From Aplysia californica (lineage: Eukaryota), in NCBI RefSeq assembly GCF_000002075.1, contig NW_004797470.1:899491-963490 (forward strand): a stretch of 64,000 nucleotides of DNA. The letters are read 5' to 3'. Below the pieces are notes generated by a model. The model worked only from the letters and a program-made list of their open reading frames with translations, was not told where the DNA came from and did not search any database. A program made the position numbers and the translations under genes. Each line of letters starts with the position of its first letter. Position 1 is the first letter of the stretch. Positions 16,101 through 64,000 of the stretch are shown here, piece after piece.

Positions 16101-19100
16101 AGACGTTTAGAGTGCCCGGGTCGCGTCCTACCATCCTGTACCAAAATCGAACCACACACTGCTGGTTTGCGGCTGGCATTGAGTAGAGGATGGTGGCTGT
16201 TGTGTTGGCTGTCAGAGCCGCTGAGGAGTATGAGGTCAAGTAGTGTCCGTAGCTTGAGTGTGTGGTGTGGTCATCCGGTGGTCTTCTGTACGCACTTCCT
16301 ACCCCGGTGTTCATTCCCTGGACGAGTGACCAAGTGTTCCGTCCGCCCACCATGTTCTTCCAGTCTCCAATGCCTTGCTCGAACGTGGACTTGGCGTAGA
16401 GGTAGCACAGCTGGTTGTCCTCATCGGAGCCGTCACAACAGTCGGTGCTGAGGTCACACTTGTGGTCCTCCAGGATACAACGACCGTCGCCGCAGCTGAA
16501 CTCTCCCGCGCCGCAGTCGGCTGGGGGCGGACTCTGGCAGTTCTCGAAGGCAAAGTCGTCCAGGAAGAGTTGAGACACGGAGGAGTATATAGACCGATAG
16601 GTGACCACAATCTGGAACTCTGAGGAGCAAGGAGGAAGCGCCACCGACAGTTTGGTCCACTGGTTGAGGGGCAGGTTCGTTCTTCTCTCAGGCCATATGA
16701 TGTTATCGTAGCCTCCTGCCCGCACGCTGATGGTGAAGAGCGAGGGCTGTCGAACCGCTTGATACCACAGGGAGAACGTGCAGTGCGTGCTGGCTTTGCG
16801 GTAGAATGAGGATAACAGGATCAGAGTGTAGGAGCTATAACTTGTCCCAGGGTCGGGGGAGATTACGTGACCCTGAGGAGAGCCCGGGTTGTGGTCAGCG
16901 TTGATCATTGTCTTGGAGACTAAAGATACGATAGAAGACGCGGAGGAAGAAGAATTCGAGCCTTGGATCTTCCACCCACAAGCACCGTTCTCAAAGTTGC
17001 AGGTCGGTGGACAGCTGGCTTCATCTGTGCCGTCGGTGCAGTCTGCATAGAAGTCACACCAGGCAGAGACCGGCTTACACTGACCATCACACTGGAATTC
17101 CTTGCCCGCCTGGCACTGGCCTGGCGCTAGCGTAGGTCTCAGAGGTGGCAGCGTGCGGCGCACGTCTGGGATACAGCCGGGCGTCCAGGTGATGTCGTCA
17201 ATGGCTATGTCTCCCGTGTACTTTACGCCACGCACCCCCTCAAACACCACGCGATATGTGGATGGGTCGCTCAACTCCACCACTGCTTTCTGCCACTCGT
17301 CTCCTCCAGCGGACGCTTGCGGCATACTCCACTTCAAAGTCCTAGGCCCCCCTTCCTTCATTTCGGTGTAAACTGCCAGTTCGCTCACAGCATCCTGGGC
17401 TACGTGATAGAAGAATCGCATGTAGCAGGAAGCTGGCCCGTTGGGGTAGAACACGGGACCTTTGATCCTGGCAGTCTCATTGATCTTGTGGACAGTGCTG
17501 AGAGGCATGTACAAGAAGTGACCTGTTCTGTTCCCGTAAGTATGGTCTCTGCCCGGTCTTGTGGAGCCAGCGCTTTTGATCTGCCAGTCAAACTGATCTG
17601 TGCCGTCTTGCCTGAAGCCGCAAGTCCCTTGCTCAAAGGAGCAGCCGACATAGTTGCCACAGTTCATCTCGTCCTCCCCGTGAGCACAGTCTTGAGCATA
17701 ATCGCACACCACGTCGAGATGTTTACATTCACGTGACGTGGTGCACGTGAACTCCTGATCTGAGCACGTGTTGTGAGCGAGCCCACGAGAACACGATTCG
17801 CTGAAGGACACGTCGTCAATAGCCACAAACGTACCACTGGGCGGTCTCTTGTAGTCAAATCGGAACACCACCCGGAAACCTGCAGCACGAGAGCCGATGC
17901 CAACTCTTGCCTGGCGCCACTGGGAGGAGGTTCGAGCCCTCCACAGGCGCACGCCCGAAGCCGTTGACTTGTAGTTGAGCACACCGTCCGGGTACAGGTA
18001 CATCGAGAGTACATCTGGGCGGTCGCTGACGTAATAGAAGCGGATCTCACAGGTGGCCTCTGTGGCCCCGTACACCGGAGACTCGAAGATAGAGATACTG
18101 GTGTAGCCCTCCCCGCTGGACACAGGCAGCATGAAGTGACCCACGCCTTTGATGCCCAGAGTGTGGTCGAGGGTAGGTCTGTGGACCAGCTCGTCCTGTG
18201 TAGTGTTTACTCGGGTCCAGGAATACCTGTAGGAAACCAACACATGGTCAAATTAAATTGTAGCAACCCCCCTCCCCGCCGATCAAATTCAAGTCTGTTG
18301 CTGGAACCAGCTTTTTTGTCACGACTCTGGTCTACTGCAACATTATATTTTCATATTTAAAGAACATAGTATGAAGGTTACCATAGTTAAGCCCTCCCCC
18401 CCCCCCCCCCCCCCCAGGCCTCTGTTTAAAGCGTTGTTTCTCGGTTGAAAAAAAGATTGAAAAAAATGAATGCTTCAACTGAACTAATATTATTTGTAAA
18501 GTTGTGTTACTATTTAAATGAGATATTCAATGAAGAAAACGTTCTTCATCAGGTGTGGCTCTGAAGCAACATACGAGTATGAGTAAGAGATATAGCTCAT
18601 TGATTTATTATAAATGTTTTACACCCCCACTTGACGAAACTTAGATCATCTAGAGGGCTGGCTGATTCGATGTAGCCTGGCCAGACCAACCAGGGCAGTA
18701 TTGGGCACAGCATCTCAGCAGATAGATGAAGAGGTTAGAAAATAGAACTTCCACACACAGGAATCGAATTCCCTGTTCTCTTTGTGCTACGGAAAAGAGC
18801 TTGTAACCGATACACCGTAGGCCCCAGTGGACATGACTTATATGTGTTAGATTTTGGCAAACAGTAGATTATAATATGCCATGAAGCATGAATTGTAATT
18901 GTAGAAGTTTTACACCTCTATCGACACAACTTAGATCATTTAGGTGGCGGGCTTCGACCCTGCCGGCTTGAGAGGGATACAACGTCTCAGTAGAAAGACG
19001 GATATATTCTTTTTTTTATTTCTCACACGGAATTGAACTCGGGTCTTCTGCACGAGTCGTTGAGATGTCCAACGGCTACACCACAGACGCTGGTCAAACA

Positions 19101-22100
19101 ATGGATGATGCCATGGAGCTGTACAGATATGAATGGAAATTGGAAGGGGGATGGATTTACCTGTTGACACTGTGGTCTGTCCAGCCACACGTTGAGGACT
19201 CAAAGTCACAAACTCCACAATTCTGCTCATCGGAACCGTCGAAGCACTGGGTGAGGAAATCGCAGACCTGGGACTTGGGGATACAGTTCTGGTGGTCAGC
19301 GCATTGCCACAGGTTGGGGTCTCCACACGGGTTGGGCGTGGTTGTCGCAGGGCTGGGCGTGGCAGTGGGGAAACTGTCAGGGCTGACAGCGCATCCCGGG
19401 GCAAAGATGATGTCATCAATACCGATGTCTCCAAAAGAACCGTAGCCGCGGACACCTTCGATGACCACCTGGAACGGTTGTGAGCTGAAGATAGGGACAG
19501 TTTGAGGGAACCAGTAGTTGCCATTGTCCGAGTTGTCTGAAAACCTCAGCGTGAGAGGGCCGTTGATGGCTGTCCGGGTGTAGACGTTCAGCTTGTCGAT
19601 GTCTCTGCCGTACATGTGAGCGAAAAAGGTCATCAGACACAGGTTGGTCGGGGCTAGGGCAGGACTCACCAACCAGGCTCTATCCCCAGGCAAGCGACCT
19701 AAGGCCTTGATGTACAGGTAGTGTCCGGTGGCTAGTGATGTGGTGTGGTCCACTGAGGGACCCGTGGAGTGCAGAGGCGTACTTTTGGTGTTGCGCGTCC
19801 AGTCAAACTCATCCAGGACGTGCTCTTGGGTCCAGTCACACAGGTCCGACTCAAAACTGCAACGGTGGTAGGCGGAGCACGTGGTGTCCAACTCATCCGT
19901 GCCGTCACCGCAGTCGTCAACAAAGTTGCACGCCAACTTGGGGGAGATACAGCCTCCGTTGGCACATTTGAAGCTGTTAGCAGCCGATTGACAACTCGTG
20001 TTAGGGTCTGGGTAGTCACAGTTTCGGAAACTGATGTCGTCAATAGCGATATCACCAAGAGTGGTGTACGATCGCTTGGCAAGGATAGCCACGGTAAAGG
20101 GAGCGTTGGATGCTCCTATAGGAACGACCTTTTGCTGCCAGCTGTCGCCGTAATCCATATTGGTGCTGAAGAGGGTAAACTCCTGAACACCCTCTTTCCT
20201 GGAGACCATCAGTGTGCCGATGTTTGTGCCCGTCATGTGGAAAAAGAAGACGAGCTCGCAGTTGGGGGCCGAGCGCTGCAGTAGCGGACTCTCAAAGCGC
20301 GCCGTGCCGTACCTGCCACTCTTAGCGTCCACGTACATGTAATAGCCCGCAGGTGCTCCCAGGGTGTGGTCCACTGTAGGGCCCGTGTTAGCGTTGGGGG
20401 TAGCTCCCCGTAACTTTCTCCACTGATACGAGCCCTGTTGAGTGTTTTTCCACTTACAGTCCTTCTCAAACGTGCAGTCATACTCACACGCCGTTTCCTC
20501 CTCTCCATCAGGACAGTCTTTGTGGAAGTCACAGACCATTCTGCGGGATAGGTACTGGCCGTTAGCCGAGCAGTGGAAGGCGTTGAAGGTTGGAGCTGGG
20601 GTGGATGAGGAGCAACTGCCCATTTGTATGGCCAGGTCATCCAAGGCAATATCACTCCTCATCTGGGTGCCAATGGTGCCCTCTAGAATGACAAAGAATT
20701 CAGAGCTGAAGGGTCCCAATGTGACACGCTTAGCATTCCAGACGGCCCCCTGGTCTCCTGACATGGTAAACAGTGTTAAGGGAGCCGTTGCCGACGAAGG
20801 CAAAGTTTGAATCTTTACAGTGAATTTACCTACAGACGAACCTTTCATGTAATACCAAAGGTTGAGGCAGTACGTTGTTGAGACTTTCAGGCGAGGGGAA
20901 ACTAACTGAGCTACATCTCCAGGTTTCCTTGGGAGCAGACTATCTAAGACCAGGTAGCCTCCGTACTTTGTATTTAGAGTGTGGTCAACGCTAGGCCCTG
21001 TGTATGTTCTGTAGCCTCGACCCCGGAGCCAGTCAAACGTGTCCCCTGTCCGGGTGTTGCTCCAAGCACAGATCTCCCCCTCAAAGTCACAACTACCCAA
21101 GCCTGGACACTGACCGCTAATGAGAGACACGTCGTCAATGGCCAGGTCTCCAGCACCGGACCCCGAGACTTGAGCCTCAAACATCAAGTAAAATCGCGAG
21201 TTGCTGGCGACATTCACAAGAGCTAATTGCCATGGAGACGAGGTTCCAACTGATGGGGCGAATGTTTGAAGGGTAGAACTGAGAGCCGAACCTTCTGCTA
21301 GCTGCTGTATGGAGAGCTGAGCCTTGCCCGGCCGGTACCAGAAGGTAAAGCAAGAAGCGTCCGTGGGTGTGAACACAGAAGTCTCCAGGCGAGCCACGTC
21401 CCCGACCGACCTGTCCGGTGAAGTGACATTTGCCAGAGCGAAGTGGCCCTCGCTCGTGCCAAACGTGTGGTCAACAGACGGTGAAGAGCTAACTGCACCG
21501 GATGACGCCACTGCAGCAGCGGCTGTGACAGTCCAATCAAAATCATCCGCGGGCACTTGCATGAATTTGCAGAGTCCGTCCTCAAAATCACACCTCGGCG
21601 AAGCCGGGCAGTCTCCTAAGTTCATGGAGAAATCGTCGAGAGCTATATCCCCATTGTTATCAGCTGTCTCAAGGGCCTGCGCTGTGAGGAAAGCTGTGGC
21701 TCCGATCATGTCTTGTACGTGAACTTGCACAAACTTCCACTCAGGCCCTTGTGTGCCGACACGTGTCCACAAGAGGTCACTGTTCCCGCCTGGGCTGCTG
21801 GCGTTGACGTACAGGCTGAGCCGCCCGACGCTAGACCCATACATATAGTACCAGAATTTGAAGCAAATACCGCCAGTGGGTATGGTCACTGTGGGGCTGA
21901 CGAGCCTGGATGTTCCGCTACGCCTGAGTGTGCTGGGTCGGTAGATATAGTGTCCGAGAGCGTTGTTGTACGTGTGGTCAGCAGTCGGACCTGTTGCCGT
22001 GCTGGGGGTTCTACCGGCTCGGACCAACCAGTCCTGATCATTGCTTGGATCTTGTTTCCACAGACAGAACTGGCTCTCAAAGTTACAGTCCAGCTTGGTT

Positions 22101-25100
22101 GCTGCATAGGTCGGAGGGATCGTGGATGGAGGAGGTGTGGTGGACAGTTTCTGTTGGCCACCACAGGGGAAGCTGAACAGATGTATGTCATCTATGGCAA
22201 TATCTCCCGAATAGTTGCCACCATACACGCCCTCGAAGATGTACTCAAACATCTGAGAAGAGTGGACTGTGACCTGCCCTTTCTGCCATGAGTTCCCTTG
22301 ATTGTTGCTCAGAGCCCACACCAACGTCTTCAGGCTGCTGCCAAGCAGTTTTGTGTAGATGTTGAGCGTGCCGATACCGGCCCCGTACATGTGGTACCAG
22401 AACTCCAAACAGCTGCCCGTAGTGGCCGGGATGGGCTCACTCTGAAGCCAGGCACTGTCTCCCAGTTTGTGGCTGCCCGAAGTCTCAATGTACAAGTACT
22501 GCCCTTGTTTAGTGCCCGTCGTGTGGTCTACTTGTGGGCCCGTGTTGGAGGACAATGTACCTGCACTGTCCAGTACCCAGTCAAACTGATCCCCTTTCTT
22601 CACATTGAAAAACGCACACAGACCCTGTTCAAAAGAGCAGGAGCCTATGGGTTGACAAGGGAGAAAACTGACAGCGATATCATCAATGGCAATGTCACTT
22701 GTGTAACTTGATCCCCTAACTCCTTCAAATTGGATTTGTAAAGGTTTGCCGTTACCCGAGAGCTGGACGCTGGCTTTCTTCCAGGCATTCTCCTGCGGGC
22801 CTTGTAAGCTCCAGAGTTTGACGCTGGCTGAGCCAGGTGTCTTCTTGTAGACATTGAGCGTGCCCATGCCGCGGCCGTACATATGGTACCAGAAGGTGAG
22901 GCAGCCGCCGTACACTTTGTAGTCTTTGCTGGTGATGACTGCAGTGTCTCCAGTCGCACGTCCTGAGGCCTCGATGTAGGCGTACTTCCCCACAGATGAG
23001 CCGTGAGTGTGGTCAGTTCCTGGACCCGTGCCACTAGAGCTTGTTGCGTTGTTACCAAGTGTCCAGTTAAACACATCGTTCGTCTCCTGGGTCCAATCAC
23101 AGAATCCAGACTCAAAGGTGCATTCCTTGAGAGCTGGACAATCACCTCTCTTGGTGGTGATGTCATCGATGGCTATATCTCCCTGGTAGCCGGTGCCGAT
23201 AGTAGCCCGGAACGTGAGACCATACGAACTGCTCATGTTCATAAATACGTTCATTTGTACCCATTTGTCTGCCTGCGTGCCAGATAGAGACCAAAGGATG
23301 TCGGCTTTGCGAGCGTAAGGGCTAGTGGATAGTAGCTGCAGCGACCCAATGTCTTCTCCATGCATGTGGTACCAGAAGGACAGGCAGTAGCCAATCAGGT
23401 CTGTGGGCGGCAGTGTTGGGCTCACTAGGTCCGCCGTTTCGTTTTGTTTTCTAGGTGAAGAACTTTCAATGTACATGTACTTCCCACTACCCCCGTGAGC
23501 GCTCGGAGGTCCAGTGCCAGAGCTAGAGGTCGGGCCACTATTGTGCGTCCAGTCAAACACGTCACTGTTGGTCTGCTTCCAGTTGCAAGTGTTCTGGTCA
23601 AACGAACACGCCACAGACGGGGGTGCCTTGGTCCGGCTGCAGGACGAGAAAGAAACGTCGTCAATAGACGCAAAGTTCTGGAGACTCGCACTGCTCTGTG
23701 CTGTACTCGAGGCTTCATACCAGATCTCGATCTGGGTACCAGACGGAAGTTCTCCAACAGTACGTCCAAGGTAAACGTACGCAGCGCGCCAATTTCCGCT
23801 AAATGTCGGAGAGGACCACACACGGGTTTTAACACCTTTGTAGGGCACCATGACCGACAGTCTTCCAGCTGCGGGATTTATGTGGTAGAAAAACTTCATA
23901 ACACACAGAGTGGACGTACCGCCAAGCACGGGGGAGCGAAGGATGGCCGGGGAGGACAGGATGCCGTAAGCTGGTTTTATGTAAGCATAGTGGCCGTTGG
24001 CGTTGGCCAGCGTGTTATCTATTGAAGGCCCCACTTTACCCATGTCTGCTGGTTTGCTCAGATCCCATCTATAGTGTCCAGAGCTGGCGTGGAACCAGCC
24101 GCACATGGTTCCATTCTCGAAGTTACAGGTGCCACACTGAGCCTCATCTGAGCCGTCAGAACAGTCTGGATCAAAGTTACAGACCTTGTTGAGTCCCACA
24201 CACTGGCCGCTGGTACATTGGAAGTATGTCGAGTAGCACGTCCTTTTCGTGGTGGCAACCGTTGTCATGGTGTAAGTAGCTGCTGGGAGGGTGGTACCGG
24301 TGGCCACTTTACATCCAGGTGAAAGAGTAACATCGTCCAGTGCCATGTCTCCGAGGTAAGAGCCCACGACACCCTCGATAATCACCCTGAAGGACTTCTG
24401 GCTCACCAGAGGGATGATGGCGCGTGCCCAGAAGTTCTGACGGGTGCTGAGTTGGGTGAAGAGAAGCTGTGGGTACCCTGCCTTCTCTGTGAGCATGTAG
24501 ATGTTGAGGGGCTGCATGGTGCTCCCGTACATGTGATAGAACAGTGAGAGGTGACACTGATCCGACACTTGAGCCGGACTCACCACTGGGCTCATTAGCT
24601 TCGCCTTCTGGCCCGTCTTCGCTGGGCTCGAGGTCTCTAGATACACAAAATGACCGGTGTCCAGCCCCGTACTGTGGTCAACTGAAGGCCCGGTATTGTC
24701 CGTGGGGGTTGGCCCCTGGTGTATTCTCCAGTCCATATCGTCATGGGTGTCTTGCTGCCAGCTGCACAGGTCCGTCTCAAAGTTACACCGGTGTGCTTGA
24801 TTGCAGCTGAGGTCTGTCTCATCACTGTTGTCTCCACAGTCGTCCGTCAGATCACACAGGTACACGCGGTCCACACACACGCCATTGCCACAGCGGAACT
24901 TTGTGGACGGGCAGGACGCTGCAGGCTGAGGGGGCCCGCAGTTCACAAACTTTGTGTCATCTATAGCGATGGACCCCGGGGTGGAGTAGAGCCTTGAGGC
25001 TTTCAGCAGAACCCGAATCTGACTGGTGTAGTGGCCAACGTACACTTGCGCCAGAGCCCATTTGGAGCCGGTGGTGGGCATAGGGGGCGCCTTCCAGATG

Positions 25101-25202
25101 GTCATTTCTCTCGAGCCAATCTGTACCGAAACAATCAACCATACAGTAGTTACGCTGCAAGAGGCTCAATAATTATAATTTGAGGAAAAGTTAGTACACA
25201 CA

Positions 25203-25280
<78 letters not shown>

Positions 25281-28200
25281 ACTGAATAACTATCGCAATT
25301 ATAATAGAGTATTTACAATACATAAACACAAGGCAACAGGAACAATAATGTCAAAACTGAACTGAGAAAAAAAGGAACAGAGAAAAATGCATGTATCACA
25401 AGATCATGGAAATAAGCATATACAAAAACAAGTAATGAGGTCAAGAAACGAGATTAATAAAGTAGCAGTAAGATGTCTTATCACTCGCCCCCCCCCCCTT
25501 CCCCACTCAAGAAAATCACACTCTTTAAATCCTCAACAGTTCTACATCAGTTGGTTACAGAACAGCCTGTGTTGTCCTTAACTCTCTCAGACGATAGTAG
25601 AAAAAGCATTCCACATTGGCTCACCCACAAACTTTTTGATCTTCTTCTCTGTTTCTTTGATGGATCTTTCCGACTAATGCAGTATCATGTTCCCAAACAT
25701 GGTCTAGTTTTCTAAATCTGAGGGTTTTTCTCGTGTTTTACGCAGCCACAGGACCTTTATTGTCTTTTGGGGGGGGGGGGGGTACTTTTAGGCCTACTAT
25801 TAAATTCTACATCGAACATAACCCATTCGTAACCCAGATAGCACCATTTTATCTTCAAGAGAACAACACTTGCCTCCTCCTCCCCCTCCCTAATCGCCCC
25901 CCCCCCTAACCCCACACATTAAGTCTACCTGACAAAAGATGTCTGAATGTGACAAATGATGAACTGTCATCTCCTCTACAAGAAAACTAACCTGAATGTC
26001 GACAGACAGACTGCCCGCCGGTTTCTTGTAGTAAAACTGGAACTGGCAAGTCTCGTATGTGGCATGTAGCAAGGGGGTGGTCAGCGTGGCCTTGCTGGCG
26101 TAGGGGCCTTGACTTCGTGACACGTACATGAAGTGACCAGAGGTCGAGTCCAGGGTGTGGTCAGCTCCCACTCGATCCTTGAGGTCGTCTGTGTCCAAGT
26201 CCCGAGCTTGCTTCCACCTAAAGGCTCCTTTGCTCACGTCGGAGAAGCCGCAGAGATCTGTTTCGAACGAGCAAGTGCCACAGTGGGCCTCGTCTGTGGC
26301 GTTGGCGCAGTCTGGGTGGTAGTCACACACCTGCACACAGAGACAGACAGAGGTGTATTTAGATTTACCGGCACACAGAGACAGACAGGGATATACTTAG
26401 AATTACTTAGACTTAGAAACTACTACGTCTTGAAACGCACCAGTTTTTCAGAGATGACCAGGAAAATCTGTCTGCAGCTATCACAAGGACACCACTCCAT
26501 TTTTTTGTCCACAAGTACTTTTGCAATAGTCCGTTTTCCTTTCATTTTTGGTCGCCCCCAGGCCTCTCTTTCCACCGAAGACAGAGAGAAGTGTACACCC
26601 ACATAGAAACTATTAAAATTTGCATTATTTAGTACAATAGCTGCTCTGACCCTACATGTCAGGGCTAACAGTGGTAACTTGCTGTACACAGTTGGCCGAT
26701 TTGGTAACTTTGGTGAGCAGTGAGAATCACCTGCATAGTCACAGGTATTATTTGATGCCCCTCTTGGAAATACATGGCATGTTGGTGGCGGGTACGAAAA
26801 TGCTAGCATCTGATAGATAACAAAATTGGACGCTGTGGCAATAGGAGGGTTGACAAGCACTAATTTACAATATTTAAAGGATGATAGCTGTTTTGAGACT
26901 GCCTGTCAAGGCTAACAGTAGTCACAAGCTGTACAAGGAGAGAACGCTTTTGTAATTCTTCAATCATGTTTAACATCCCCTTTGATACACTTCAAATCAC
27001 TCTAGGACTTTTGAATCTCCATAAAGGCCATAAACATCTTGCCCTCGTTGGAGAAATAGACAGCAAAAGAGACAGAGGTACACAAAGAACAGTTTCTTGT
27101 AAGATATTATAGTTAGAAAATCATACCTTCTTGTAACATATTTCAGTTCCCATTCGTTTCAGTTCCCTTTAAGACCTTGAAGGATATTTTAGTTCCCATT
27201 CATACCTTCTCGTAAGATATTTTAGTTCCCAATTATATACCTTCTTTTAAGGTATTTTAGTTCCTATATAATTAGATCTTCCTGTAAGATGTTTTAGTTC
27301 CCATTCATACCTTATAAGATGATTTAATTCCCATGCATACCTTGTAAGATTTTTTAGTTTCCAAACTTACTACGTAAGTATTTTAGATTCCAATCGTTTC
27401 TTGTAAAATATTTTAGTTCCTTATCATACCTTCTTGTAGGATGTTTTAGTTTCCAATCGTACCTTAAAGTGGAATATTTCAGTTCCATTTAACCATTCTT
27501 GTTGGACACTTAAGTGTCCATTCCTACCTTGCTGTGAGATATTGTACTTCCATCTCCACAAGTGAAACTATCCGGTGGCTTTACGCAGCGTCCAGAAGTG
27601 AGTTGTATGTCATCAATAGCCATATCGCTGACGGACGGGTCGCCAACTACTCCCTCAAACATCAGGCTGTACGGACTTGTGGAAGAAATATCAACCTGCC
27701 CGAGACAAAAATACGAGGTAAAAAAAATATCAAGTCACAAGCATAAAAATACATAAACATAGGGATATATCTTCAAATTCATAATAAAAATAATGCCTAA
27801 TAATATTAATAATAATGATAATAATAACAATAATTTTTTACAAATAATAATNNNNNNNNNNNNNNNNNNNNNNNNNNNNNNNNNNNNNNNNNNNNNNNNN
27901 NNNNNNNNNNNNNNNNNNNNNNNNNNNNNNNNNNNNNNNNNNNNNNNNNNNNNNNNNNNNNNNNNNNNNNNNNNNNNNNNNNNNNNNNNNNNNNNNNNNN
28001 NNNNNNNNNNNNNNNAGCCCATATCCACGATCTATGGCATGCTCTATAAACTTTACATACAACTATCATTACCCAAATAGACACTACAACACGACTCAAA
28101 AACATTTTCTGCTTCCCGGGAAGTGTACAACTCAGGTAGCAAATAACAAGCGCTCAATCACTAACAAATTGAAAAGTAAATTAAATTCTAATACAGAAAA

Positions 28201-31200
28201 TAGATTAGAAAAAAACAGAACAGAAGGAAAAATACTTAGCTTGAAAACACTCGAATAAAAAGACATCTTTTAATGTACTGATGTTATTTGTACTAAAAGA
28301 GCATATTACCTGTTCATGAACCCAGTTCACGCCTTGGGGTCCGGTCATTGTCCAGAGTGAGGAGTAATGTCCACTTCCTGCAATGTCGTTGTCCCAGTAA
28401 ACAGACATTGTTCCTGCGTCATTACCTTGGTACATCTTCACATAGAAGCTCAGACAGGAGGCGCGGGTGGCCTTCAGTACCTCCGAGTACAAACGAGCTT
28501 TCTCCCCTCGCTTTCTGTACTTTGTGTCGATGAGCATGTAGTGGCCTGGGAAAGTCACAACAAAACAGATAGGTAAAACAAGGGGCGTAGTTAGCTCAGT
28601 TGGTAGTTTGCTGGACTGAGGGACTTCGAGCTAATATTATTGTGTCTTATAATTGTAGTAGTCTAACAATACGACAATATACAAAAACTTATGATTTGAT
28701 CTTCACAATCCATCTAGCACTGTGTTAATGTCCAGGGACTTAAATTCTCCTTCTGAGCGACCCCCTTACATAAAGGACAGGCCTGTACACAGCAGCTCAC
28801 CTAAGCTGGTCCGCAGCGTGTGGTCAGATGTAGGTCCACTCTGTGCATAAGAACTGCCTTGTCTGATCTCCCAGTCAAAGTCATCTCCCGGTACACTGTT
28901 GTAATAGAGACAGGGTCCGTTCTCAAAGTCGCAAGTGGCAGGAGGGGGGCAGGCCCCGAGGACAACTGATACATCATCAATGGCGATGTCGCTGGTCACT
29001 GAGCCACCAAGCACTCCTTCAAACACAACCTGAATAGCAAAAAAAAGCACAGGGCATTCAGTGGAAGCAGAGAAATAAACAACACAGCAATATTTAACCA
29101 TACACATTAAAAGCAAGCAAAGCAATTAATAGCCCATCAATATTTAAAACAAGTGGAGCAATTAATAACTAACACCGCAATATTTAAAACATGCGTAGCA
29201 ATAAATAACACAACAATATTTAAAGCATGAAGAGCAATAAATAACATAGAGATATTTAAAGCAAGCAGAGCAACTACGAGTACCAACACAGCAATATTAA
29301 TGATAGCACAATTATAGACAGAACAGCAATACAGTGGAATTTGGTTTCAATGAACTCGTATTAAACAAAGAGAGTTGGGATTCCTTGATTTTTTTATTCA
29401 TAAAATTAAATAAAAATAACCCGGATTCAACGAATACATAAATGAGCAAGCTTAAATTCAATGAAGTTGCTTGCAGGGTGAACTGCTCTATACGAATAAT
29501 CACCGGTCTCCTTCCATACCAACACAGGCGTCATAATCACGCACCCATGTCTTAGCGTGTGTCGGGGTCTGACGGGCGGCCAGCTAACAAGTGACTATGT
29601 GTGCATGTGTCTTGGGGGATGGGGGAGGGGGAGGGAGTACAAACGGTCTGGGCGTGGAACGTCAGTAGAGAAACAAAGACGACGCATTCATTTTTTTCCT
29701 TGGCTACTGATATATATTGCAATGATAAGCGAGTCTTAACATAGATCTACATAATGAATTGCCCGTTGAACTGGAATCAAATGTTGCCGTATGCTAGGCT
29801 CTACCCAGCAACAGAACTCGTTTGGCAAACAATACGTTATAGAAGATAGATGACTCAGGCATGTATTTGAACAAATGGGATCTTTTGTACAGTGTGTGCT
29901 TGGTAGAGTTCAGTGTATTTTCCTGAAATTTTCCAGCAATTCTGTGGTATCAAAGAAATGAAAGTTCCTCTCATTTGAAACCAAACTGCTTTTGACTGAG
30001 AAAGTCGAATATATTATACATTACTTGCTCGGTGCTGTAATTTTCTACACAAAAACCTCATAACGAAATCGAAGGCCAGGCCCAACGATTTCGTTGAATC
30101 CGAGTTCCACTGTATTTAACAATGCGTAGCGATAGACAATACAGAGATATTTAAGACAATCAGACCAAAAAAACAGTGGAGTGATATTAAATGCTTGTCA
30201 TCACACACAAGAGATGCGAGTTCAACTTGCATGTGGGTAAAATTTTCATCAAGTATGTTGGTCTATCTGTTGGGATGTTGAATCCCTCTTAGTCTGGGTT
30301 ATTGGCCTTTACAGACAGGACAGAAGCCCATCTTTTAAATGATCTAAATTGTGTTGATGGGGGCATAAAAATGCTTAAAACTAAAGTAAAGTTGTTCCCC
30401 CATCCGACCCGGACATTGGGGATTGCCTTGTTAGTGAGACAACATCCTGAGCCTTCGGCATATTGTGTTAGGGTGGCCAGTTCCTTTCCACACTACCTTT
30501 ACTTTCCCAACTCGAAGTCAGGTGCTCATTACTGCTGGGTGGAAAGGAGAGGGGGAAAAAATCTGTGTCCAAACGAAGGCTCGAACCCGGACTTTCACTT
30601 CGGAGACGAGCAAGTTAACCGCTCCGCCACCGCACCCTCAAAAAATGCTTACACTGAAAAAAAAAAATCTTTTTATACTAAACAGTGTATGTCACCTGGT
30701 AATCAGCAGCACTATTGATGGTGACAGCGGCCGGCTGCCATTGGTTACCCTGATTCCCCTTGGCCGACCAGATCGGAGAGTAGAGGCGACCGCGACGTTT
30801 CAGATAGACATTCAGTGTGCCCATATTGAGGCCGTACATGTGGTAGAAGAACTTGAGACATTTCCCGGTGGTGGCTTTCTGTGGTGGGCCCACCAGGCGT
30901 GCAGTGTCACCGCTTTTGGCAGGGGCAGATGACTCTGTGTACATGTAGGAGCCTGTAGGAAGAAATGGCAGAAGGTTACTTGGATACAAGTGCAAGCCAT
31001 AAGAAGAAAAAGAAATCATAAGTTTTACCTTCTTACACATTCTTTGATTGATTTCAAACCTACTGATGACGTCACTCCTTAGGAGAATATCAAGGAAGTC
31101 AAGATCAGAAGAGAGGGAAGTAGTACTTGGGCAGTTTGTGTCCTCTATGTTTACTGCCCAAGCAAAGTTGTATCACGCTTACTGTTTTATGATAGTCTGT

Positions 31201-34200
31201 CGAAATGGATAGGGCCATCATCAGTAAGTCACGAGTTACAATTATTCTTATTTGGGTTCTAGTGCAGGCCATTACAAGTGATAATAATAGTCACCCCTTG
31301 AGCAACACAACATGGAACATGAAAGATTTCAAGAAGATTCTATTGATCTTAAAGGCCTTCCCGTTCATCCACACAATATAATAAAAGACTCAACAAATAA
31401 GTAAATTGGAGCAGCACTTCAGATGCACAAACTTTAATAAAAGAACAAGAAAGAAAAGAATAGTCTCTGTAGATGCTTGACATCTCCATCGACACTATTT
31501 AGATCCTCTAGGAGACCTACTGCTTCGACCAAAACAGTCAGGGCCAACCTGAGCTGAGAGGGATATAACGTACTACCAGAAAGACGAAGATACTCAATAC
31601 AAATCCTCTGAATGCAACACCAATAAAGTGCCTAACCACTACACCACATATGCAGAGTATTTAAACTACAACAGAATCCGCCCTAAAGATCACCTGTCCA
31701 AGACAATCACTCGTACAAATGGCCACTTATCATTTTGATTTTTTTTTTATGACCACTTCTTATTTCCCTCTTGAATTTTAAAAATATTATAATGGCATTG
31801 CCCGAGATGTCTACCTGTCTAAAACAATCACTTTACTCTTACACAAAGGGAGGTCTTTTCGGACAATTTTTGGGGGGAAAAAGGAGAGAAAAGCTGACCT
31901 GTGGAAGTGCCGTAGGTGTGGTCACTGGATGGTCCGGTGCTCCCCGATGGTGTGCGTCCACTGGTTTGTGTCCAGTTGAGTGTGGCCAGATTGTCCTGGC
32001 TAAAGCCACAGATGCTCACGTCTTCAAAGTCACATACACCTGGTGGAAAAAAGAAGATACAATAGCAACTAGACATCAAACTTTTCATCCACTCAGTTTT
32101 TAAGTAAAATGCAGTCACTCAAATTATAAATCAATGGTGTTATGCTTTAACCGCCTCGTAAATTGCTTGGAAAAATCATTGAACACATGCCCTCCAAAAA
32201 AAGGGGGGAAACCCCGTCTTTTTCTTCAAGTGAAGAGAAAGCAAAAAAGTTTGCCAAGTACTTTTATACTATTTATAGTGCATGCAGATTTCTGCCCACA
32301 CAGGAATTGAACTCAAGTCTCCCGCATGCAATAGCAACTGCAAGCTCATGCTCAGTAATTAACCGAAGACCCATAGATAAACCTCTGTAAAGTTTACAAA
32401 AGAAAAAGAGAGTTATTTGGTGTCAGCACTTATCTTTGTCACTGCTTTCACAATATTGATATGGTAAAGCTCAAAGAAAGACTGGAGTGAACAATCAACT
32501 TGGATTTTTTATTGCTATGGACTTATTAACAATCATTTAGTGATGAGAGAAAGCAAAAAAAGCAATCAGAATTTTCAAACAACAGAGGGAGAGAAAAGAA
32601 GTAGGGTGTACTAGTGGCAGACAACCAATGTCAGAGCTGGCGAGCCTTTTCTAAAATTAATACATCTCTATCACCTCAAAGTTATGCACAATTTGGCCGC
32701 AGGATTACCTCCATATTCCAAACAAGTTCCCGGATGTGTGGAGATATCATCAATGGCTGTATCCCCCAGGTAGCTTCTTAGCATCACAGCTTCAAAAACC
32801 ATCTGCAATTTAAAAAACAAAAATTTAATTAAACTTACATAATTTATATAAAACAACAAATGTCTACGTTCGAAATGTACTCAGTCAAGAGAATACATGT
32901 GAGGCATCATGGTGAAATCAGGCGCTCGTCAAAATAGTGAAATTGGAGAAATCAGCATTTTCCCGTCGTTTCGGCTATTTTTACACATGTATATGGCTTT
33001 TGGTTCATTGAAGTCCTGTTACAAACACATTTCTAAATAGATTTTACTGAATATCTATGATTAAAGGCACAAAAAGTATATATTTTCACTTTCCCATTTC
33101 TCTCAAGCTATGGAAATCATCAAACTTTGGCAGCCATTTTCTCGCTGAATTTACCTATGAAACCAGGTAACCCCCACCTCCTTCAATTGTTCAAGATAGC
33201 TTAGTAGCTTTTTTTTCATTGAAACCAAGACAAATGAACAAGCTTTACGTTGATACCTAAAACTTTAAATGCCCCAAGACTGACGAGCGCCCGATTCCAC
33301 CTTGTCGTGACAAATATTTCTTTTAAAAACGTAAAGAACACAAACGCAAAATTGTCATTTTCCAGATGCATACACCACGCACACCACTGGAATAAGCTGT
33401 GTGTGAGACACGCAAAGAAGTATTTTACTTTTACCCGAGAACCAGTCATATGATGGGTGTCATCAGTACGCCTACCTGCATTGTGGAGGTTGGCTGTACC
33501 AGAGAACTCGGTGTGATGTGGACGCTGGCCATCTTCCAGAAACGACCTTGATCGCCTGACCGCTGCCACAGGATAGGGCCAAGAGCGCCTGGAGACACAG
33601 AAAGGAGACAGTGACCATCAGCATATCTATGGTATTCAGGTCTAACAATGTATCTGGTTTCTTTGAAATGTTTTTTAAGGCAAAACACAAAGCCTTACGA
33701 AGGATGTTTCGTTGTTCTGTCTGTGCGGTGGGTTGGGTGGCAAAATGAGATATTTCTCAGATGTTAGCGCTGTAGTAACAGATACATAAAATTTATAGGT
33801 AGAGTTTGAACAATGTATAAGTATGGAAAAATAAAAAACATGTTAAACTTGGGGGGGAAAAGGTATCAATTGAAAACTTACAAATTTGACCCCAGTGTCG
33901 TTGACTTTCAGCCAATATTGCCAATCGTGAATTGCAAAAAGTAACTCATTTTGTCAGCCCAGCTAACACATCTATGGTGTTTAGTTCTCACCGTGTAACT
34001 GGTTTCTTTGAAAACACAAAGCCTTATCAATGGTTCTATATTCTATATTCTAATCCTATACCTGGTTTCTTGAAAATCTTTTGGAGACTAAAAAATATCA
34101 TTATTGATAGATTTAAGCTCAAGCTCTAATAAATAATAATACGTGGAGTGTACTGACGAAATGAGTTGCTTCTCGGATTCAAGCTCTTTGGAAATAGATA

Positions 34201-35711
34201 CATCATGCTTATAGGGGAAGTTTTTACAATTTATAAGTATGAAATAATAAAAGACATGTTAGACCTAAAGAATATGGCATCATTGGAAAATCTAAAAATT
34301 TGACGCTAGTTAATTTTTGGCCAATATCTCCTATTGTGGATTGCGAGAAATAACTCATTATGTCGGCACACCTCACGCGTTTAATTCAAAAATGAAACTT
34401 TATTGATCCCGAAGGGAAATTTGGTTAACAAAGGCAAACATACATAAATAAATATATAATCAAAAACACTTAATATAAAGAATATCAAATACACAATATC
34501 ATACCAATACAGAACAACTTCATGAACATGCCATATTGCCGGTTGACACTGCGCAGTGACCTTTATCATGTCTTGTTCAAGGACACACACCAATGACCAC
34601 CCGTCTAAACCCTGTGCCAATGATACTTGCTTTACATTACGTTTGAGTCTGAACTCACTATTCCCTAGGCCACTGGAGCCCCCAGCCACTGGTTTCTAGA
34701 AAAATATTTGGAGGCCAAAGACCCCCAACGCAATAGACGGTTTTATGTTCTAAAATTTTAATTTTGATTAGATTTAAATGGAGCAAAAAGACGGAAAAGT
34801 ACTCCTACACTAGTTATAGTGTGACCTGTAGCCTAATTATTTTTTTTTTGCAATGAGGATTCAGAAATTGATTTCAGCTATGGTTTTACAATAAATTTCT
34901 TGCCGTTACTTTTTTCTGACATTTATGCTCTTCTGACAAAAAACAGCTCATTTTGGGAAAAAAGAAAAGTAATGAGAAGGTTTGCATTACAAAGCACCTA
35001 TTTTAAACTGGTATACAAAGGCCTTGCTTCACAAACGAAGATACAACCACGAAAACCACACAAAAACTCATCACTGACAAGCCAATGTGGGATAGACAGG
35101 TCAGCAACACAAATGAATTAATAAGGCTGATATTCAGGGATGGACACATAGAAAACTCACCATTCTGCTGCGCATAGACATTCAGAGAGCCAATGGTGCT
35201 TCCGTACATAAGGTACCAGAATATGAGACATATGCCATCTTTGTTGAGCTGCACATCCTTACTGAACAGGCGTGCTGTGTCGTTGGCTGATGTGGGGGAG
35301 CTCTCCGTATACAAGTAGTAGCCTGGATAGCAAGAGAGTGAAAGAAAGTCACGACAATGTACAGTTATCTCAAGTACTGTTTAGCAAGGTGAAATAACGA
35401 AAGGTGAAATAACGTAAAGTGAAATAGCTTAGTGAGTTTCCATCCCTTACTCTTCATGCTTCCTTCAATCTGCCCTCTTCTCTCTGTCTACCTCTGTCTC
35501 TCTCTCTGTCTCTCTCATGGTCTCCCCCAGTCGAGTCNNNNNNNNNNNNNNNNNNNNNNNNNNNNNNNNNNNNNNNNNNNNNNNNNNNNNNNNNNNNNNN
35601 NNNNNNNNNNNNNNNNNNNNNNNNNNNNNNNNNNNNNNNNNNNNNNNNNNNNNNNNNNNNNNNNNNNNNNNNNNNNNNNNNNNNNNNNNAGAGAGAAAGA
35701 GCCACATACAC

Positions 35712-35742
<31 letters not shown>

Positions 35743-38638
35743 AATTATATATCTTCACCTCCACCCTCCTTCTGTCTCTCTATCTCTTTCTCATGGCACC
35801 AGAGCTGAAACTTTCAACACCAAAACAAGCAACACCTCTCGTACTCACCTTTTCCAGTGGTGTGGTCAAAGCTGGGTCCAGTGTAGGATGAGTCTGTAGC
35901 TCCTTTGTGGATGGTCCAGTCGAACTGGTCAGAGGTGTCCTCACTCCAGGAACACCGCGTGTTGCTGTCAAAGTTACAGTCATACTGGGAGGGTGCTGCA
36001 GCGAGAGAGAAACATTTAAAAAGGGAAAGTCATAAACAGTATTAACAAAACTTAACTGCCAACGTCTTTACAATAGGTGGAGGTGGGGTACATGAGGAAA
36101 GGGGGAGAGACCAGGATGGGATGGGGGGGGGGATTGACGGTGGAAAGGGGGATGACAGGGGTGGAGGAAAGGGAATAGAGGGGGTGGAGGGGGAGAGTGG
36201 GGGTGAACGGTGGGGCGGCTTCCAATGAGCCAAAATATTGCAATTATAATTCACCTGTCAATGTCTCACAGTGACCAATGAACTTGCATCAGAAAATATT
36301 TTTTTAAGGTAAAATAGGAGAATGAATACGGGATAAGATGACTTGTGGCTTCCTCTATGGCCCATTGGACCAATTCTGGCAGAGAGTAGCTTGACACGCT
36401 TTGAGTATTTTAAAATTTCATTTTCATTCAAACATGTGAGCTTCTCTCTTGAATTCAGCATTTTTAATTCCAAATTATATACACATGGGATTAAAACTTA
36501 TTAATTCCAAACTAGCACTTAACCTTCTCCCTTTCACAAACAAATCATATTACATTTATTTTTAAAAGCGCTACGTAAAATCCGCGATGTATAAAAACAG
36601 CCAATGCAGTACATTGAAGATCCTCCAAATACAGTCAAAACTATCTCAGAAGGCCACCCAATGTCCAGAAGAAAAGTGTGCGTCATAGGCAGGTGGAGGT
36701 CTTACACGTGTCAGTATGATAACAGGTGTCACGGCGCGGTGGAATCAGGCGCTCGTCAATTTGCGGACATGTATAGTTATGGGTATCATTTTAAAGCTAG
36801 TTCATTTGTCTTGCTATTGTTTATAAAAAGTAGGGCCTTCTCATCTATCATGAATAGAAGTCGAAGTATTTGCGATTGAAGGTGGGGGGGGGGGTGCCTG
36901 GTTTCAGAGGTAAAATTAGCGAGAAAACGGCCGCCAAAATTTGACGACTACCAAAGTTTGAGAGTCCTTAGAAACCGCAAATTTACATTTTTGTGTCTTA
37001 CATCAATATTTTTCATCAAAATCCACAAAGAAATTTGTTTTTTAATGGGTCTTAAAGACGCTGAGTTAAAAGACAAAAATTGGATTAAAATTGCCACATG
37101 GACTGAAAAATGCCATTTTCTTCAATTTAATTGTTTTGACGAGTGCCTGATTTCACTATGATGCCTCATGTATTTATATTTTCAAAAATACACAAGGGAA
37201 AAAATGGGAAGTAACCATTAGTACAGGTGATTGTCTTCAACAGGTGGTTGTTGGAGCAAGTTCAACTGTATAATTCTCAAAACATGTATTCCTTAATGCA
37301 TTGACAAGTCTGTGAGGTGTGTGAAAGCCCATGCCATATTATATTATATATTTTGTTTACGATATTATGACTGCACTGATGTTTAAAAAGAATCAAACTA
37401 ATAAAAACACATGACATTTCATCCACTGCCACAACACATAGTATCCTGTACTCACGATAAGTTGGCCTAGTAGCGACGGTGATGTCAGTGGGTGGGGGTG
37501 CCGTGGTGTTCATGCAGTCTCCATCGTAGATGATGACATCATCAATAGCAACGTCGCCCTGCCCGCCAGCTTTGCCAATTTCTCCATCAAACACGATCTG
37601 AGGATGAACAAAGAAGGATCAAAAGTAGAACATGAAAAAAAAAAGAGAAACAAGTAAGAGAAGTATTATGTTGCAAAGAAAAATAGTGTAAAGAAAACAA
37701 AGAAGAGTTGAAGTTGTATAAGACAGTCATCCATTAATGAGGAGAAATGTGTTTGTATTATGCAAATGGATGTCTTAGACAGTATCATATACATCAATAA
37801 GGCAGCGTGGTGAAATCAGGCTTTCGTCAAAATAATAAAATTGAAAAAAATTGGCATTTTTCTGCCGGTTTGGTAATTTTTATCAAATATGTGATTTATG
37901 GCTCAAAACCTTTTATGTCCATTTAAGAACCTATTTATGCGTGGGTTTTACTGAATTACGTTGATTAAAGGCACAAAAAATGTAAGTTTTCAGTTTCCAC
38001 GAACGCTCGGGCTATGTAAATAACCAAATTCTGGCGCCATTATCTCGCTAATTTTACCTCTAAAACCAAGTGTCCCCCACCTCCTTCAATTGCAAATATC
38101 TCGCCTTGTATTCAAGATAAATGGGTATTTCATTCATCGAAAGCAAGGCAAATTATGTACAACCTTTAAGGCGATACCAATAACCCCACTTGCCCAAAAA
38201 TTGACGACCGCCTGATTCCACCAAGACGTGAAAGATCTTATTTTTTTAGAATACAATGGGGAATTGGGAAGTGGTCATTTGTGCAAGTGGCAGTCTGGGA
38301 CAGGAGGCCGTTGGAACAAATCTTACAATATTTATTGAAGTGGTAGGAGCATATTAAAGTGAGTCTCCATTCCCTCTCCTACCTCCCCCTCTCCCCCCCC
38401 CCCCCTCTTTCTTCCATCCTTCAACAATTATGTTCAGAGAAAGTATTTTCATCAAAGCTTATTTAGTGAAACTATTTATGATCAAACCTATCAAAAAAAA
38501 CATCCATTGTCAATGGGGAAAAAATTGTCTTCTTCAACAGGTGGTTCTCTTGGACAGTGTCATTATAATTTAGAAAACCGCAAGGGGGAAGGTTGGGAGG
38601 GAGGGAATGGGAAGTGGTTATTTGTACATGGGATTGTA

Positions 38639-38714
<76 letters not shown>

Positions 38715-60538: not shown

Positions 60539-61490
60539 GCATTCATATCCTCTCTCACCTAATCACTCTTCCACACTTATATATACATGCACATCTCAAA
60601 TATGCTTACACTCATAAACAGACCCAGTTATGATATAAATGAACAATAATATACAGTTGACAAAAATAATCATGCTTTCTCTACTTACCACAAACTGTTT
60701 CATCTCTGAATGTGGAAGGGCAGTCTCGTTTGAAGTCACAAACTTGTGATGAAGGAATCATTGTGTTGTGGGCATCTCCACAGCTAAACTGCTTGTTCTG
60801 TCCTGTAAAAGGCCACATGAGGAGGAGTGAAATAGTGCCGTAGATCATAAATAATTTATCTATAGAGGCACCGGCCATGCATGTAGGGGTGCTGTTTCAG
60901 CCAAAAATGTGCCATAACGACTCGGATATCACAAAAGTACCGGTAAGACTCACGCCCAGTGCAAATTGACCCATTCCTTAAATCATGGCCTATGAAGAGA
61001 AAAAAAAACAGTGTAAATCCACCAACAAAGTTCTAAGCTATAAAAAAAAAGAAGTATTATCAATCGAGTCAGGGAAAAAACCAGCTCAAGAAATGTTTTG
61101 GGACACATTCAAAGACAGGATTAATGATTTAGACCAGAATTATAGCTTGTTGACAATATAATCCAGGACCAAAGTTGCCAAAAAAATCAATTCTCATCAG
61201 GGGGGAATAGGGGCCTATACAGCTTTGCAGTGAGACACAGACAAATTTATAACATATTGGCACACTTCCTTTATAGTGTTTACCAAGATGATACTTATAA
61301 CTCCATATGCTCAAAAATAACAAACACAAAAAAGAGGAGCAATAATTACAATGGAAATTTGATAAGAAAGGAGGAGGAGTAAACCATACCAGAACATGCG
61401 CCAACCACCCATTCTTTAATTCTTTATTTGGGTCAACAAAGGCACACCAAGTATTGATGCAATAACAATAATTTAGTACAAGAACAAATA

Positions 61491-63967: not shown

Positions 63968-64000
63968 CTGATCGCAACAGTAAGTGACATCAGTCTTAGT

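Follow-up and report, generated by a model that had tools for sequence, protein, structure and literature searches.

A giant MAM and LDL-receptor class A domain gene of Aplysia californica: evidence for an anciently doubled 12-domain module and a periodic MAM triplet

Introduction

In vertebrates MAM and LDLa domains are interleaved in MALRD1 (Diet1) and MAMDC4 (endotubin), which are large type-I membrane proteins of absorptive epithelia. In neonatal enterocytes, which are highly endocytic, MAMDC4 is found in apical endosomes (PMC5756061, PMC5112496), and MALRD1 acts in FGF15/19 signalling (PMC8804323). These vertebrate relatives are much shorter than the locus described here, and the fish proteins follow the order L-M8-L-M-L-M4 (L, LDLa; M, MAM) with neither a doubled block nor a long triplet array. 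Arthropod models of the MLRP 1/2-like type, in Ornithodoros (XP_064478697.1, 6,419 aa), Amblyomma (XP_077503876.1, 7,453 aa) and Pycnogonum (CAM1320644.1, 7,512 aa), share with our locus a MAM-only array, L-M-L-M-L-M7 twice, (L-M)n and a terminal LDLa, with the same position-specific linker lengths, but they have 9-10 upstream MAM domains compared to 39 here and only about 29-32% identity. In the literature that we searched, MLRPs appeared in gene lists only, and descriptions of their architecture or of the triplet/block hierarchy treated below were not found.

Here we analyze a 64-kb window of Aplysia californica DNA, meaning the whole stretch under study, together with the DNA upstream from it. 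An earlier note on the window had proposed that the encoded protein became longer when a block of about 1,600 aa was duplicated, like the super-repeats of titin or nebulin, and that this points to a periodic structural or ruler function. The super-repeats of titin and nebulin recur many times and are matched to a periodic partner, and domains of the same position are more alike than neighbours.

Results

Domain order of the locus

Using HMMs built from the window as well as Pfam, matches to MAM (PF00629) and LDLa (PF00057) were obtained on the minus strand only. The window-built HMMs counted 27 MAM, the number given in the earlier note, and 15 LDLa, and along the minus strand the order is the end of one MAM, L-M-L-M-L-M7 twice, and then (L-M)8-L. 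When the upstream DNA was added the locus read M39 - [L-M-L-M-L-M7] - [L-M-L-M-L-M7] - (L-M)8 - L, and the whole locus, about 200 kb long, contains 65 MAM and 15 LDLa. Downstream of the last L follow cysteine-rich pieces, a predicted membrane span and a predicted NPxY tail. The features are:

61755..64000, minus strand: U39, last MAM (class c) of the upstream MAM-only array, found with our own MAM HMM; exons at about 63974-63792, 63093-62854 and 61850-61755 (HMM), the first exon lying beyond base 64000
60802-27600, minus strand: unit A overall, in 32 coding pieces
60690..60802, minus strand: unit A LDLa 1, a single exon with predicted acceptor 60802 in phase 1 and domain start at 60797; 19 bits with Pfam PF00057, which is under the cut-off, and assigned to L1 by position profiles
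58210..60377, minus strand: unit A MAM 1, 4 exons; profile p1 with a margin of 33 bits
57501..57605, minus strand: unit A LDLa 2; Pfam 41.7 bits, profile class L2
53074..56023, minus strand: unit A MAM 2, 4 exons; profile p2 with a margin of 42
54173-54020, minus strand: third exon of unit A MAM 2, open into the assembly gap 53709-54019
51913..52008, minus strand: unit A LDLa 3; Pfam 34.1 bits, profile class L3
27600..49542, minus strand: unit A MAM 3 to MAM 9, 3-4 exons each, from profiles and from Pfam on single exons; by HMM A3 49542-47243, A4 46730-43974, A5 43353-41207, A6 41173-37532, A7 35978-32740, A8 32034-28967, A9 28933-27600
27528..27695, minus strand: exon shared by MAM A9 (its end) and unit B LDLa 1 (its first half), from the open frame 27734-27513 and splice prediction
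27590-20630, minus strand: unit B overall, almost intron-free (HMM and Pfam)
about 27590-27528 and 26336-26280, minus strand: unit B LDLa 1, split (HMM and Pfam)
26273-25986 and 25156-24947, minus strand: unit B MAM 1 with one intron; profile p1
24913-24815, 24787-24323 and 24238-24134, minus strand: unit B LDLa 2, MAM 2 and LDLa 3 (Pfam, HMM and profiles)
20630..24127, minus strand: unit B MAM 3 to MAM 9 without introns (Pfam, HMM and profiles); by HMM B3 24127-23702, B4 23608-23156, B5 23122-22673, B6 22639-22178, B7 22087-21623, B8 21592-21122, B9 21091-20630
12674..20584, minus strand: (L-M) x 8 and the last LDLa (HMM), with L-M pairs at 20584-13625 and the last L at 12781-12674; MAM C1-C8 at 20476, 19861, 18228, 17643, 17001, 16386, 15708 and 15087/13852
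19160..25165, minus strand: giant open exon of about 2,000 codons, from the end of B1 to the start of C3 (open frames)
14710..18252, minus strand: second giant open exon of 1,181 codons, from C3 to most of C8 (open frames and Pfam)
3195..9637, minus strand: probable 3' end of the gene, from translations only

Splice-site prediction gave weak donors at, for example, 54039, 45819, 42000 and 30726, and exon ends at such sites are approximate. The A5/A6 border and the A8/A9 border each fall within one exon. Pfam alone found 10 and 6 MAM and 5 and 5 LDLa in the first and second giant exon, respectively, and it also gave matches on single exons of unit A; the giant exon of about 2,000 codons is present in a relative as well. 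The translations of the 3' end contain cysteine-rich EGF-like pieces, a hydrophobic exon at about 7036-6719 that may span the membrane, and predicted tail exons with two NPxY motifs and a stop, at about 5941 and 3332-3195.

It is clear that units A and B each contain 3 LDLa and 9 MAM in identical order, as the earlier note had it, and its unit borders match ours to within tens of bases. The run after B begins in the manner of a third unit and then gives way to L-M pairs, also as had been described; C1 and C2 score as M1 and M2.

All named top matches were called 'MAM and LDL-receptor class A domain-containing protein' and came from molluscs, echinoderms, arthropods, rotifers and fishes, and Aplysia proteins were 38-70% identical to pieces of the locus. 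With many MAM and LDLa per chain, best matches of that name and the L-M-L-M-L-M7-(L-M)n module, the locus is, judged by its domains, a member of the MLRP family, with MALRD1/Diet1 and MAMDC4/endotubin as its vertebrate relatives.

One gene or several

Frames, splice phases and orthologous gene models suggest that the upstream array, unit A, unit B and the (L-M)8 run are read as one transcript, in which case the domains of the window would make up the two thirds of the ectodomain that lie nearest the membrane, in one giant gene of about 11,000 codons on the minus strand. The exon at 27528..27695 joins units A and B physically, as it carries the end of A9 together with the first half of unit B LDLa 1.

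We consider it unlikely that the upstream MAM array, unit A, and unit B with the tail are separate neighbouring genes in a tandem cluster. Such a cluster would agree with the public Aplysia models, which split a similar locus on one scaffold into M19 and M3-LMLMLM7-(LM)8-L, and RNA support for a joined transcript was not found: two polyA runs filed under the same species had reads on interspersed repeats only and none on the exons within 24950-30949. Against a cluster speak the exon shared by A9 and unit B, the arrangement of all pieces on the same strand, in order and with phase-compatible borders, and the models from tick, sea spider and hemichordate, where MAM array, blocks and tail are joined in one protein. 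The RNA outcome neither supports the gene nor proves it silent. Other runs returned as possible RNA turned out to be DNA, since the introns were covered evenly.

Positional identity of the block domains

For assigning domains to positions we used profiles made from a single block of 17 proteins, all of them from other species. The profiles placed 8 of the 9 MAM domains of unit A and 8 of the 9 of unit B at their own position, along with all five LDLa tested. For M3 to M9 the calls were p3, p4, p6, p6, p7, p8 and p9 in unit A, where A5 is missed by 11 bits, and p3, p4, p5, p6, p7, p5 and p9 in unit B, where B8 is missed by 8 bits. Of the 8 MAM domains in the (LM)8 run, 7 match their positional counterparts in the corresponding run of other species. 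Linker lengths are equally fixed, being 2, 11, 6, 25, 2, 15, 10, 10, 28, 10 and 10 aa over 31 blocks, and the M3-M9 linkers of unit B (about 17, 11, 11, 30, 10 and 10 aa) follow the pattern of other species.

Direct comparison of unit A with unit B gave 37% identity on the diagonal versus 33% off it (permutation p 0.002), with p 0.0005 after removal of row and column effects and p 0.014 for the tail only. The raw identity matrix is unusable without such centring, as its best matches are dominated by short or conservative domains. The position profiles are far clearer than this identity diagonal. Position-specific similarity, which had been deduced from quoted peptide strings, is thus borne out by profiles and diagonal alike. 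All twelve strings lie at the expected places, but for the most part they repeat the generic consensus of MAM domains. Three of them could be ranked; the partner domain came first of 64 with two and fifth with the other.

The expectation that the MAM domains would cluster by position in a tree fared less well. In a plain IQ-TREE phylogeny of the 26 A, B and C MAM domains neighbouring domains never paired, but 16 of 23 branches were unresolved and A4 paired with B6 and A6 with B4. These two pairings run counter to the profiles and may stem from too few columns and the attraction of slowly evolving domains such as B6. Read from profiles and linkers, the 12-domain block is a module of great age and fixed make-up, each domain keeping its positional identity across many phyla, and units A and B are by the same reading true paralogous copies of one such block of about 1,650 aa.

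The MAM triplet as the periodic unit

The MAM domains of the upstream array fall into triplets a-b-c with a short linker between b and c and a long one between c and a. Similarity within this array is positive at lags 3, 6, 9, 12, 15 and 18, and profiles from other species recover the a-b-c order in 36 of the 39 upstream domains (p 2e-14). Exon fusions occur only at b-c borders, and linkers of period three are also found in a hemichordate, echinoderms and molluscs. There are 13 consecutive triplets upstream, the tail of each block adds two more, and the triplets are conserved across phyla. Judged from linkers and lags, the truly periodic unit of the protein is the MAM triplet and not the 12-domain block.

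It is very unlikely that the 12-domain unit is a periodic super-repeat of the titin/nebulin type, acting as a structural ruler. The conservation of same-position domains and linkers is what one would see in true super-repeats, but the full block occurs only twice, with a partial third copy, and at most twice in the arthropod and mollusc proteins examined. Counting units upstream revealed no further block: the search for LDLa among the 39 upstream MAM domains gave a best relaxed match of 8 bits compared to 38-55 bits for real LDLa, and since these 39 domains lack LDLa the block is most probably not a periodic ruler. The periodicity that is observed is one of three MAM domains rather than twelve.

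Having named the triplet as the periodic unit, we may tentatively take the idea further. The triplet might be a rigid structural super-repeat across Bilateria, its b-c linker always being about 10 aa, and 17 such units could build a periodic rod or lattice at the surface whose length sets a spacing, for example in an apical coat, with the doubled block as a fixed 'head' on the same triplet logic; we regard this as a possibility on the doubtful side. The MAM structures in the PDB (enteropeptidase, MDGA1, neuropilin, RPTP mu and meprin) are of single domains only. An AlphaFold2 model of the triplet B7-B9 from a four-row alignment gave three beta-sandwich domains with an arrangement that is not confident (pLDDT 68.7, pTM 0.50).

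Age of the doubling

Units A and B are, at 37% identity, no closer to each other than any two MAM blocks, and both are closer to a gastropod block (46% for A, 49% for B; support 95-100). Unit A shares a group (support 99/96) with the block of Pomacea and block 1 of both Biomphalaria and an Aplysia paralogue; unit B falls together with Aplysia XP_035827620 and block 2 of Biomphalaria and the same paralogue (support 100/99). Since each unit clusters with its own gastropod counterpart, the doubling is older than the divergence from these gastropods. On this phylogeny it took place before the lineage parted from heterobranch gastropods, and neither copy has been lost since then.

The two-block layout is also seen in Ornithodoros XP_064478697, Amblyomma XP_077503876, Pycnogonum CAM1320644 and Meganyctiphanes CAL4063834, the annotated proteins of ticks, sea spider and krill having M9-10, two blocks and then (LM)n. 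By AU tests, all first blocks may go back to a single origin (p 0.33) and the mollusc blocks may equally form a clade of their own (p 0.37), neither being rejected. One doubling before the mollusc/arthropod split is thus possible, and so are parallel doublings, between which the tests do not discriminate.

The growth of the present protein by block duplication, as the earlier note had it, is not supported by these results. In its recent form, in which a block of about 1,600 aa was copied in tandem in this lineage and the gene may still be expanding, the idea could point to the shared domain order of the two units and to their weak but significant diagonal, but we find it highly improbable given the low A/B identity, the nearer gastropod blocks, the loss of nearly all introns in B compared to the 32 coding pieces of A, and the presence of both blocks, with the same fused exons, on a gap-free contig from a relative at about 54% identity.

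Integrity of the assembly

The window contains six assembly gaps, all within unit A, of which five are intronic and one clips an exon end. In four cases (27852-28015, 35538-35689, 40719-40852 and 46169-46332) the gap separates two exons of a single MAM domain, and the MAM HMM columns join across it without loss. The gap at 51604-51765 follows the third LDLa, which is complete, and precedes column 1 of the MAM after it. The sixth, 53709-54019, clips exon 3 of MAM A2: the frame is open to base 54020, corresponding to MAM column 128, and the exon after the gap begins at column 133, leaving a few codons and the donor site unread. The gaps were analyzed without filling any N, and continuity across them is not provable from the present assembly. 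That unit B is a mis-assembled copy of unit A, a thought invited by the six N runs in unit A, can practically be dismissed, as the units differ in sequence and intron content, contigs from two other DNA runs (possibly of the same sample) span 25488-27794 with the A-to-B exon unbroken, and the relative's contig has the same domain number and order without any N.

Discussion

Taken together, the data make it very probable that the locus is one giant MLRP gene in which an ancient tandem-doubled 12-domain module is conserved architecture and not a length-setting repeat, with the MAM triplet as the periodic element. By analogy the product would be a type-I apical or endocytic receptor-like glycoprotein, in which single LDLa modules and MAM beta-sandwiches may form a long ectodomain of fixed order and the NPxY motifs of the tail could couple the receptor to clathrin adaptors. 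No new kind of system or function is revealed; the known MLRP family gains a member.

The giant MAM/LDLa proteins of invertebrates appear as a fixed, position-specific architecture of MAM triplets, a 12-domain module present once or twice and an (L-M)8 run, and not as loose interchangeable repeats. This architecture appears to have been kept since before the diversification of molluscs, and it is also found in arthropods, echinoderms, hemichordates and rotifers. Annotators gain a template for joining fragmented MLRP gene models, and for structural biology the triplet and the block are defined pieces suited to expression and structure determination.

The closest named relatives of the locus are the gastropod MLRP models. 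The block of Aplysia XP_035827620.1 (M3-LMLMLM7-(LM)8-L) is sister to unit B at 49% identity and is followed by the same (LM)8-L tail, the Pomacea (P0028) block is sister to unit A at 46%, and Biomphalaria XP_055899040.1 and the Aplysia paralogue carry block 1 and then block 2. These public models are partial or split, and the two-block layout of the direct orthologue is contained in no single one.

With titin and nebulin the locus shares that same-position domains are more alike than neighbours, and it differs from them in that its 12-domain unit recurs only twice and the MAM triplet alone is truly periodic; we know of no periodic binding partner of MLRPs. The LDLR/LRP/megalin receptors have clusters of LDLa together with EGF/YWTD propellers, whereas here the 15 LDLa occur singly, with MAM domains between them, and the Pfam results of the exons scanned contain no YWTD propeller. 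What the locus would have in common with these receptors is the two NPxY motifs in its predicted tail exons.

Domain layout of the locus

The window belongs to a 927-Mb animal assembly and contains introns, microsatellites and interspersed repeats; with our own HMMs every MAM and LDLa signal in it falls on the minus strand. Writing L for LDLa and M for MAM, the locus comprises two tandem twelve-domain blocks L-M-L-M-L-M7 (units A and B, with MAM domains A1-A9 and B1-B9) and an (L-M)8 run (MAM domains C1-C8). In the contig sequence upstream of the window, fetched as far as the contig end, the MAM array carries on to window coordinate 203013 and adds 39 domains; two N runs close to the 5' end could conceal one further MAM. 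The whole locus then reads M39-A-B-(LM)8-L, with 65 MAM and 15 LDLa. Our HMMs and a string check showed the architecture, unit borders, 27-MAM count and all quoted strings of the earlier note to be correct. For comparison of MAM domains the exon pieces of one domain were placed on the columns of one HMM with local scripts, and the external searches used uninterrupted exons or giant exons as queries.

Features of the locus in window coordinates
Whole window, minus: 5'-to-3' order end of MAM, unit A, unit B, (L-M)8, L
61755-203013, minus: MAM-only array, mostly outside the window (61755-64000 inside), 39 MAM as 13 a-b-c triplets (three-MAM repeats)
60802-27600, minus: unit A, L-M-L-M-L-M7
about 27590-20630, minus: unit B, L-M-L-M-L-M7
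25165-19160, minus: open frame 1, about 2,000 uninterrupted codons; Pfam, 10 MAM and 5 LDLa
18252-14710, minus: open frame 2, 1,181 codons; Pfam, 6 MAM and 5 LDLa
3195-9637: probable 3' end of the gene, from translations; EGF-like cysteine-rich pieces, hydrophobic span, two NPxY
about 7036-6719: predicted membrane span, from translations; hydrophobic with basic residues after it
about 3195: stop closing the frame, from translations
27852-28015, 35538-35689, 40719-40852, 46169-46332: gaps, each between two exons of one MAM; HMM columns join without loss
51604-51765: gap with a complete LDLa on one side and column 1 of the following MAM on the other
53709-54019: gap cutting the third exon of A2; frame open to base 54020 (column 128), next exon from column 133

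All N were left unfilled throughout the analysis. Predicted splice phases agree across all six gaps, and the N-free contig of a relative has an identical domain count. On the question of a single gene, units A and B are joined by one exon (27695-27528), in which A9 ends and the leading half of unit B's first LDLa is encoded; the introns at domain borders are all phase 1, and arthropod and hemichordate models have one protein comprising the array, the blocks and the tail. No RNA support was found: reads of two polyA runs fell only on repeats at 29350-30650, with none on the exons of 24950-30949. The repeats at 29350-30650, in the intron between the A8 exons, are of very high copy number, with a summed contig depth of up to 300,000.

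Upstream of the giant exons each MAM is split over three to four exons, which Pfam supports exon-wise. Unit A (27600-60802) has 9 MAM in 32 coding pieces; unit B with the (LM)8 run (14710-25165) has 17 MAM in 19, including two giant exons that are common to a relative at about 54% identity. With GC3 alike in both parts (0.59-0.68), the step in GC seen along the composition profile reflects exon versus intron only, and since introns return 3' of 14761 the intron loss is internal and not simply 3'-biased. Two other repeats were seen: an intronic interspersed repeat at about 63047-63418 (about 300-370 bp, at least 40 copies on many contigs of the genome, 75-81% identity), and, in the intron region that separates the cysteine-rich exons from the last LDLa, two near-identical direct copies at about 10420-12210 (period about 795 bp), whose identical open frames occur twice in the translations.

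Position-specific similarity of units A and B

That A and B resemble each other position by position, as claimed in the earlier note, was borne out, chiefly by other species. Compared directly, the diagonal shows 37% versus 33% identity (p 0.002; after centring p 0.0005, and p 0.014 for the seven-MAM tail alone), so the position signal is weak by this route. Clustering of MAM domains, the check proposed at the time, gave a mixed answer: in a tree of the 26 A, B and C domains neighbours never pair, and A1+C1, A2+B2+C2(+C8) and B1+C3 group together, but most branches are unresolved and two pairs contradict position, A4+B6 (94/89) and A6+B4 (88/93). These two may be due to slowly evolving domains attracting one another.

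The layout L-M-L-M-L-M7-(L-M)n is widespread (rotifers, gastropods, a priapulid, a sea urchin, a spider), and position profiles were made from 17 other-species proteins that have it. They assign A1-A4, A6-A9, B1-B7 and B9 to their own positions, eight of nine in each unit, while A5 and B8 fail by 8-11 bits; with profiles from ten distant proteins only, unit A still scores 8/9. A4 (46730-43974), A6 (41173-37532), B4 (23608-23156) and B6 (22639-22178) are put at their own positions by 17-40 bits. LDLa profiles placed all five testable LDLa correctly. In the (L-M)8 run seven of eight MAM agree with the corresponding position in other species, and C1 and C2 are similar to M1 and M2. Linkers within the block are near-invariant over 31 blocks (2, 11, 6, 25, 2, 15, 10, 10, 28, 10 and 10 aa), and unit B fits. 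As profiles and linkers both agree with position, the domain positions are real and ancient; we take the profile test with other species as the decisive one for position identity.

Period of the MAM array

The 39-MAM array contained no LDLa, the best match giving 8 bits even at E up to 100 versus 38-55 bits for real LDLa. After centring, only lags of 3, 6, 9, 12, 15 and 18 domains give positive similarity (z up to 4.5), and linker lengths of period three, e.g. 10-10-11 or 18-10-35, are also seen in arrays made up of MAM alone from a hemichordate, echinoderms and molluscs. Class profiles for a, b and c, built solely from those other-species arrays and phased by linker length alone, place 36 of the 39 domains in strict a-b-c order (p 2e-14), and 7/12 domains in the tails of A and B. 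Exons fused over a domain border in the intron-rich part occur exclusively at b-c borders. Together, fusions and class order identify the M7 tail as two triplets preceded by M3, and the length of the M3-M4 and M6-M7 linkers is thereby explained. The 12-domain unit is not a periodic super-repeat; the period of the array is three MAM. With 39 upstream MAM devoid of LDLa, the suggested analogy to titin or nebulin rulers fails for the block, and the interest lies chiefly in a conserved hierarchy that rises from triplet to block to doubled block.

Age of the doubling

In concatenated nine-MAM trees A and B are not sisters. Unit A falls together with the Pomacea block, Solemya and the first block of a Biomphalaria/Aplysia paralogue, and unit B with Aplysia XP_035827620, Physella and the second block of the same paralogue (99/96 and 100/99, respectively, in the careful tree). 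Among annotated proteins, an exhaustive HMMER search turned up exactly two tandem blocks in Ornithodoros (6,419 aa, M9-two blocks-(LM)6), Amblyomma (7,453 aa), Pycnogonum (7,512 aa) and a partial krill protein. The relative's contig ENA ERZ26859052, about 54% identical in B, likewise has a MAM array and two blocks, and shares the giant exons as well as the exon fusions at A5/A6 and A8/A9. On whether arthropods and molluscs share one doubling, AU tests rejected neither a common origin of all first blocks (p 0.33) nor a clade restricted to molluscs (p 0.37). The duplication of a block of about 1,600 aa is real, in that there are two paralogous tandem blocks, but it is ancient, and public protein models already show the doubled block.

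Comparison with known relatives

The strictly conserved positions and linker lengths argue that the domains take up a defined three-dimensional arrangement, although the AF2 model made for a single triplet had too low confidence to reveal it. The nearest studied relatives are MALRD1/Diet1 (PMC8804323) and MAMDC4/endotubin, which belongs to the apical endosomes of highly endocytic enterocytes (PMC5756061, PMC5112496). Taken with the predicted NPxY tail, they suggest, with about even confidence, that the most likely role would be that of an apical endocytic or scavenger-type receptor.
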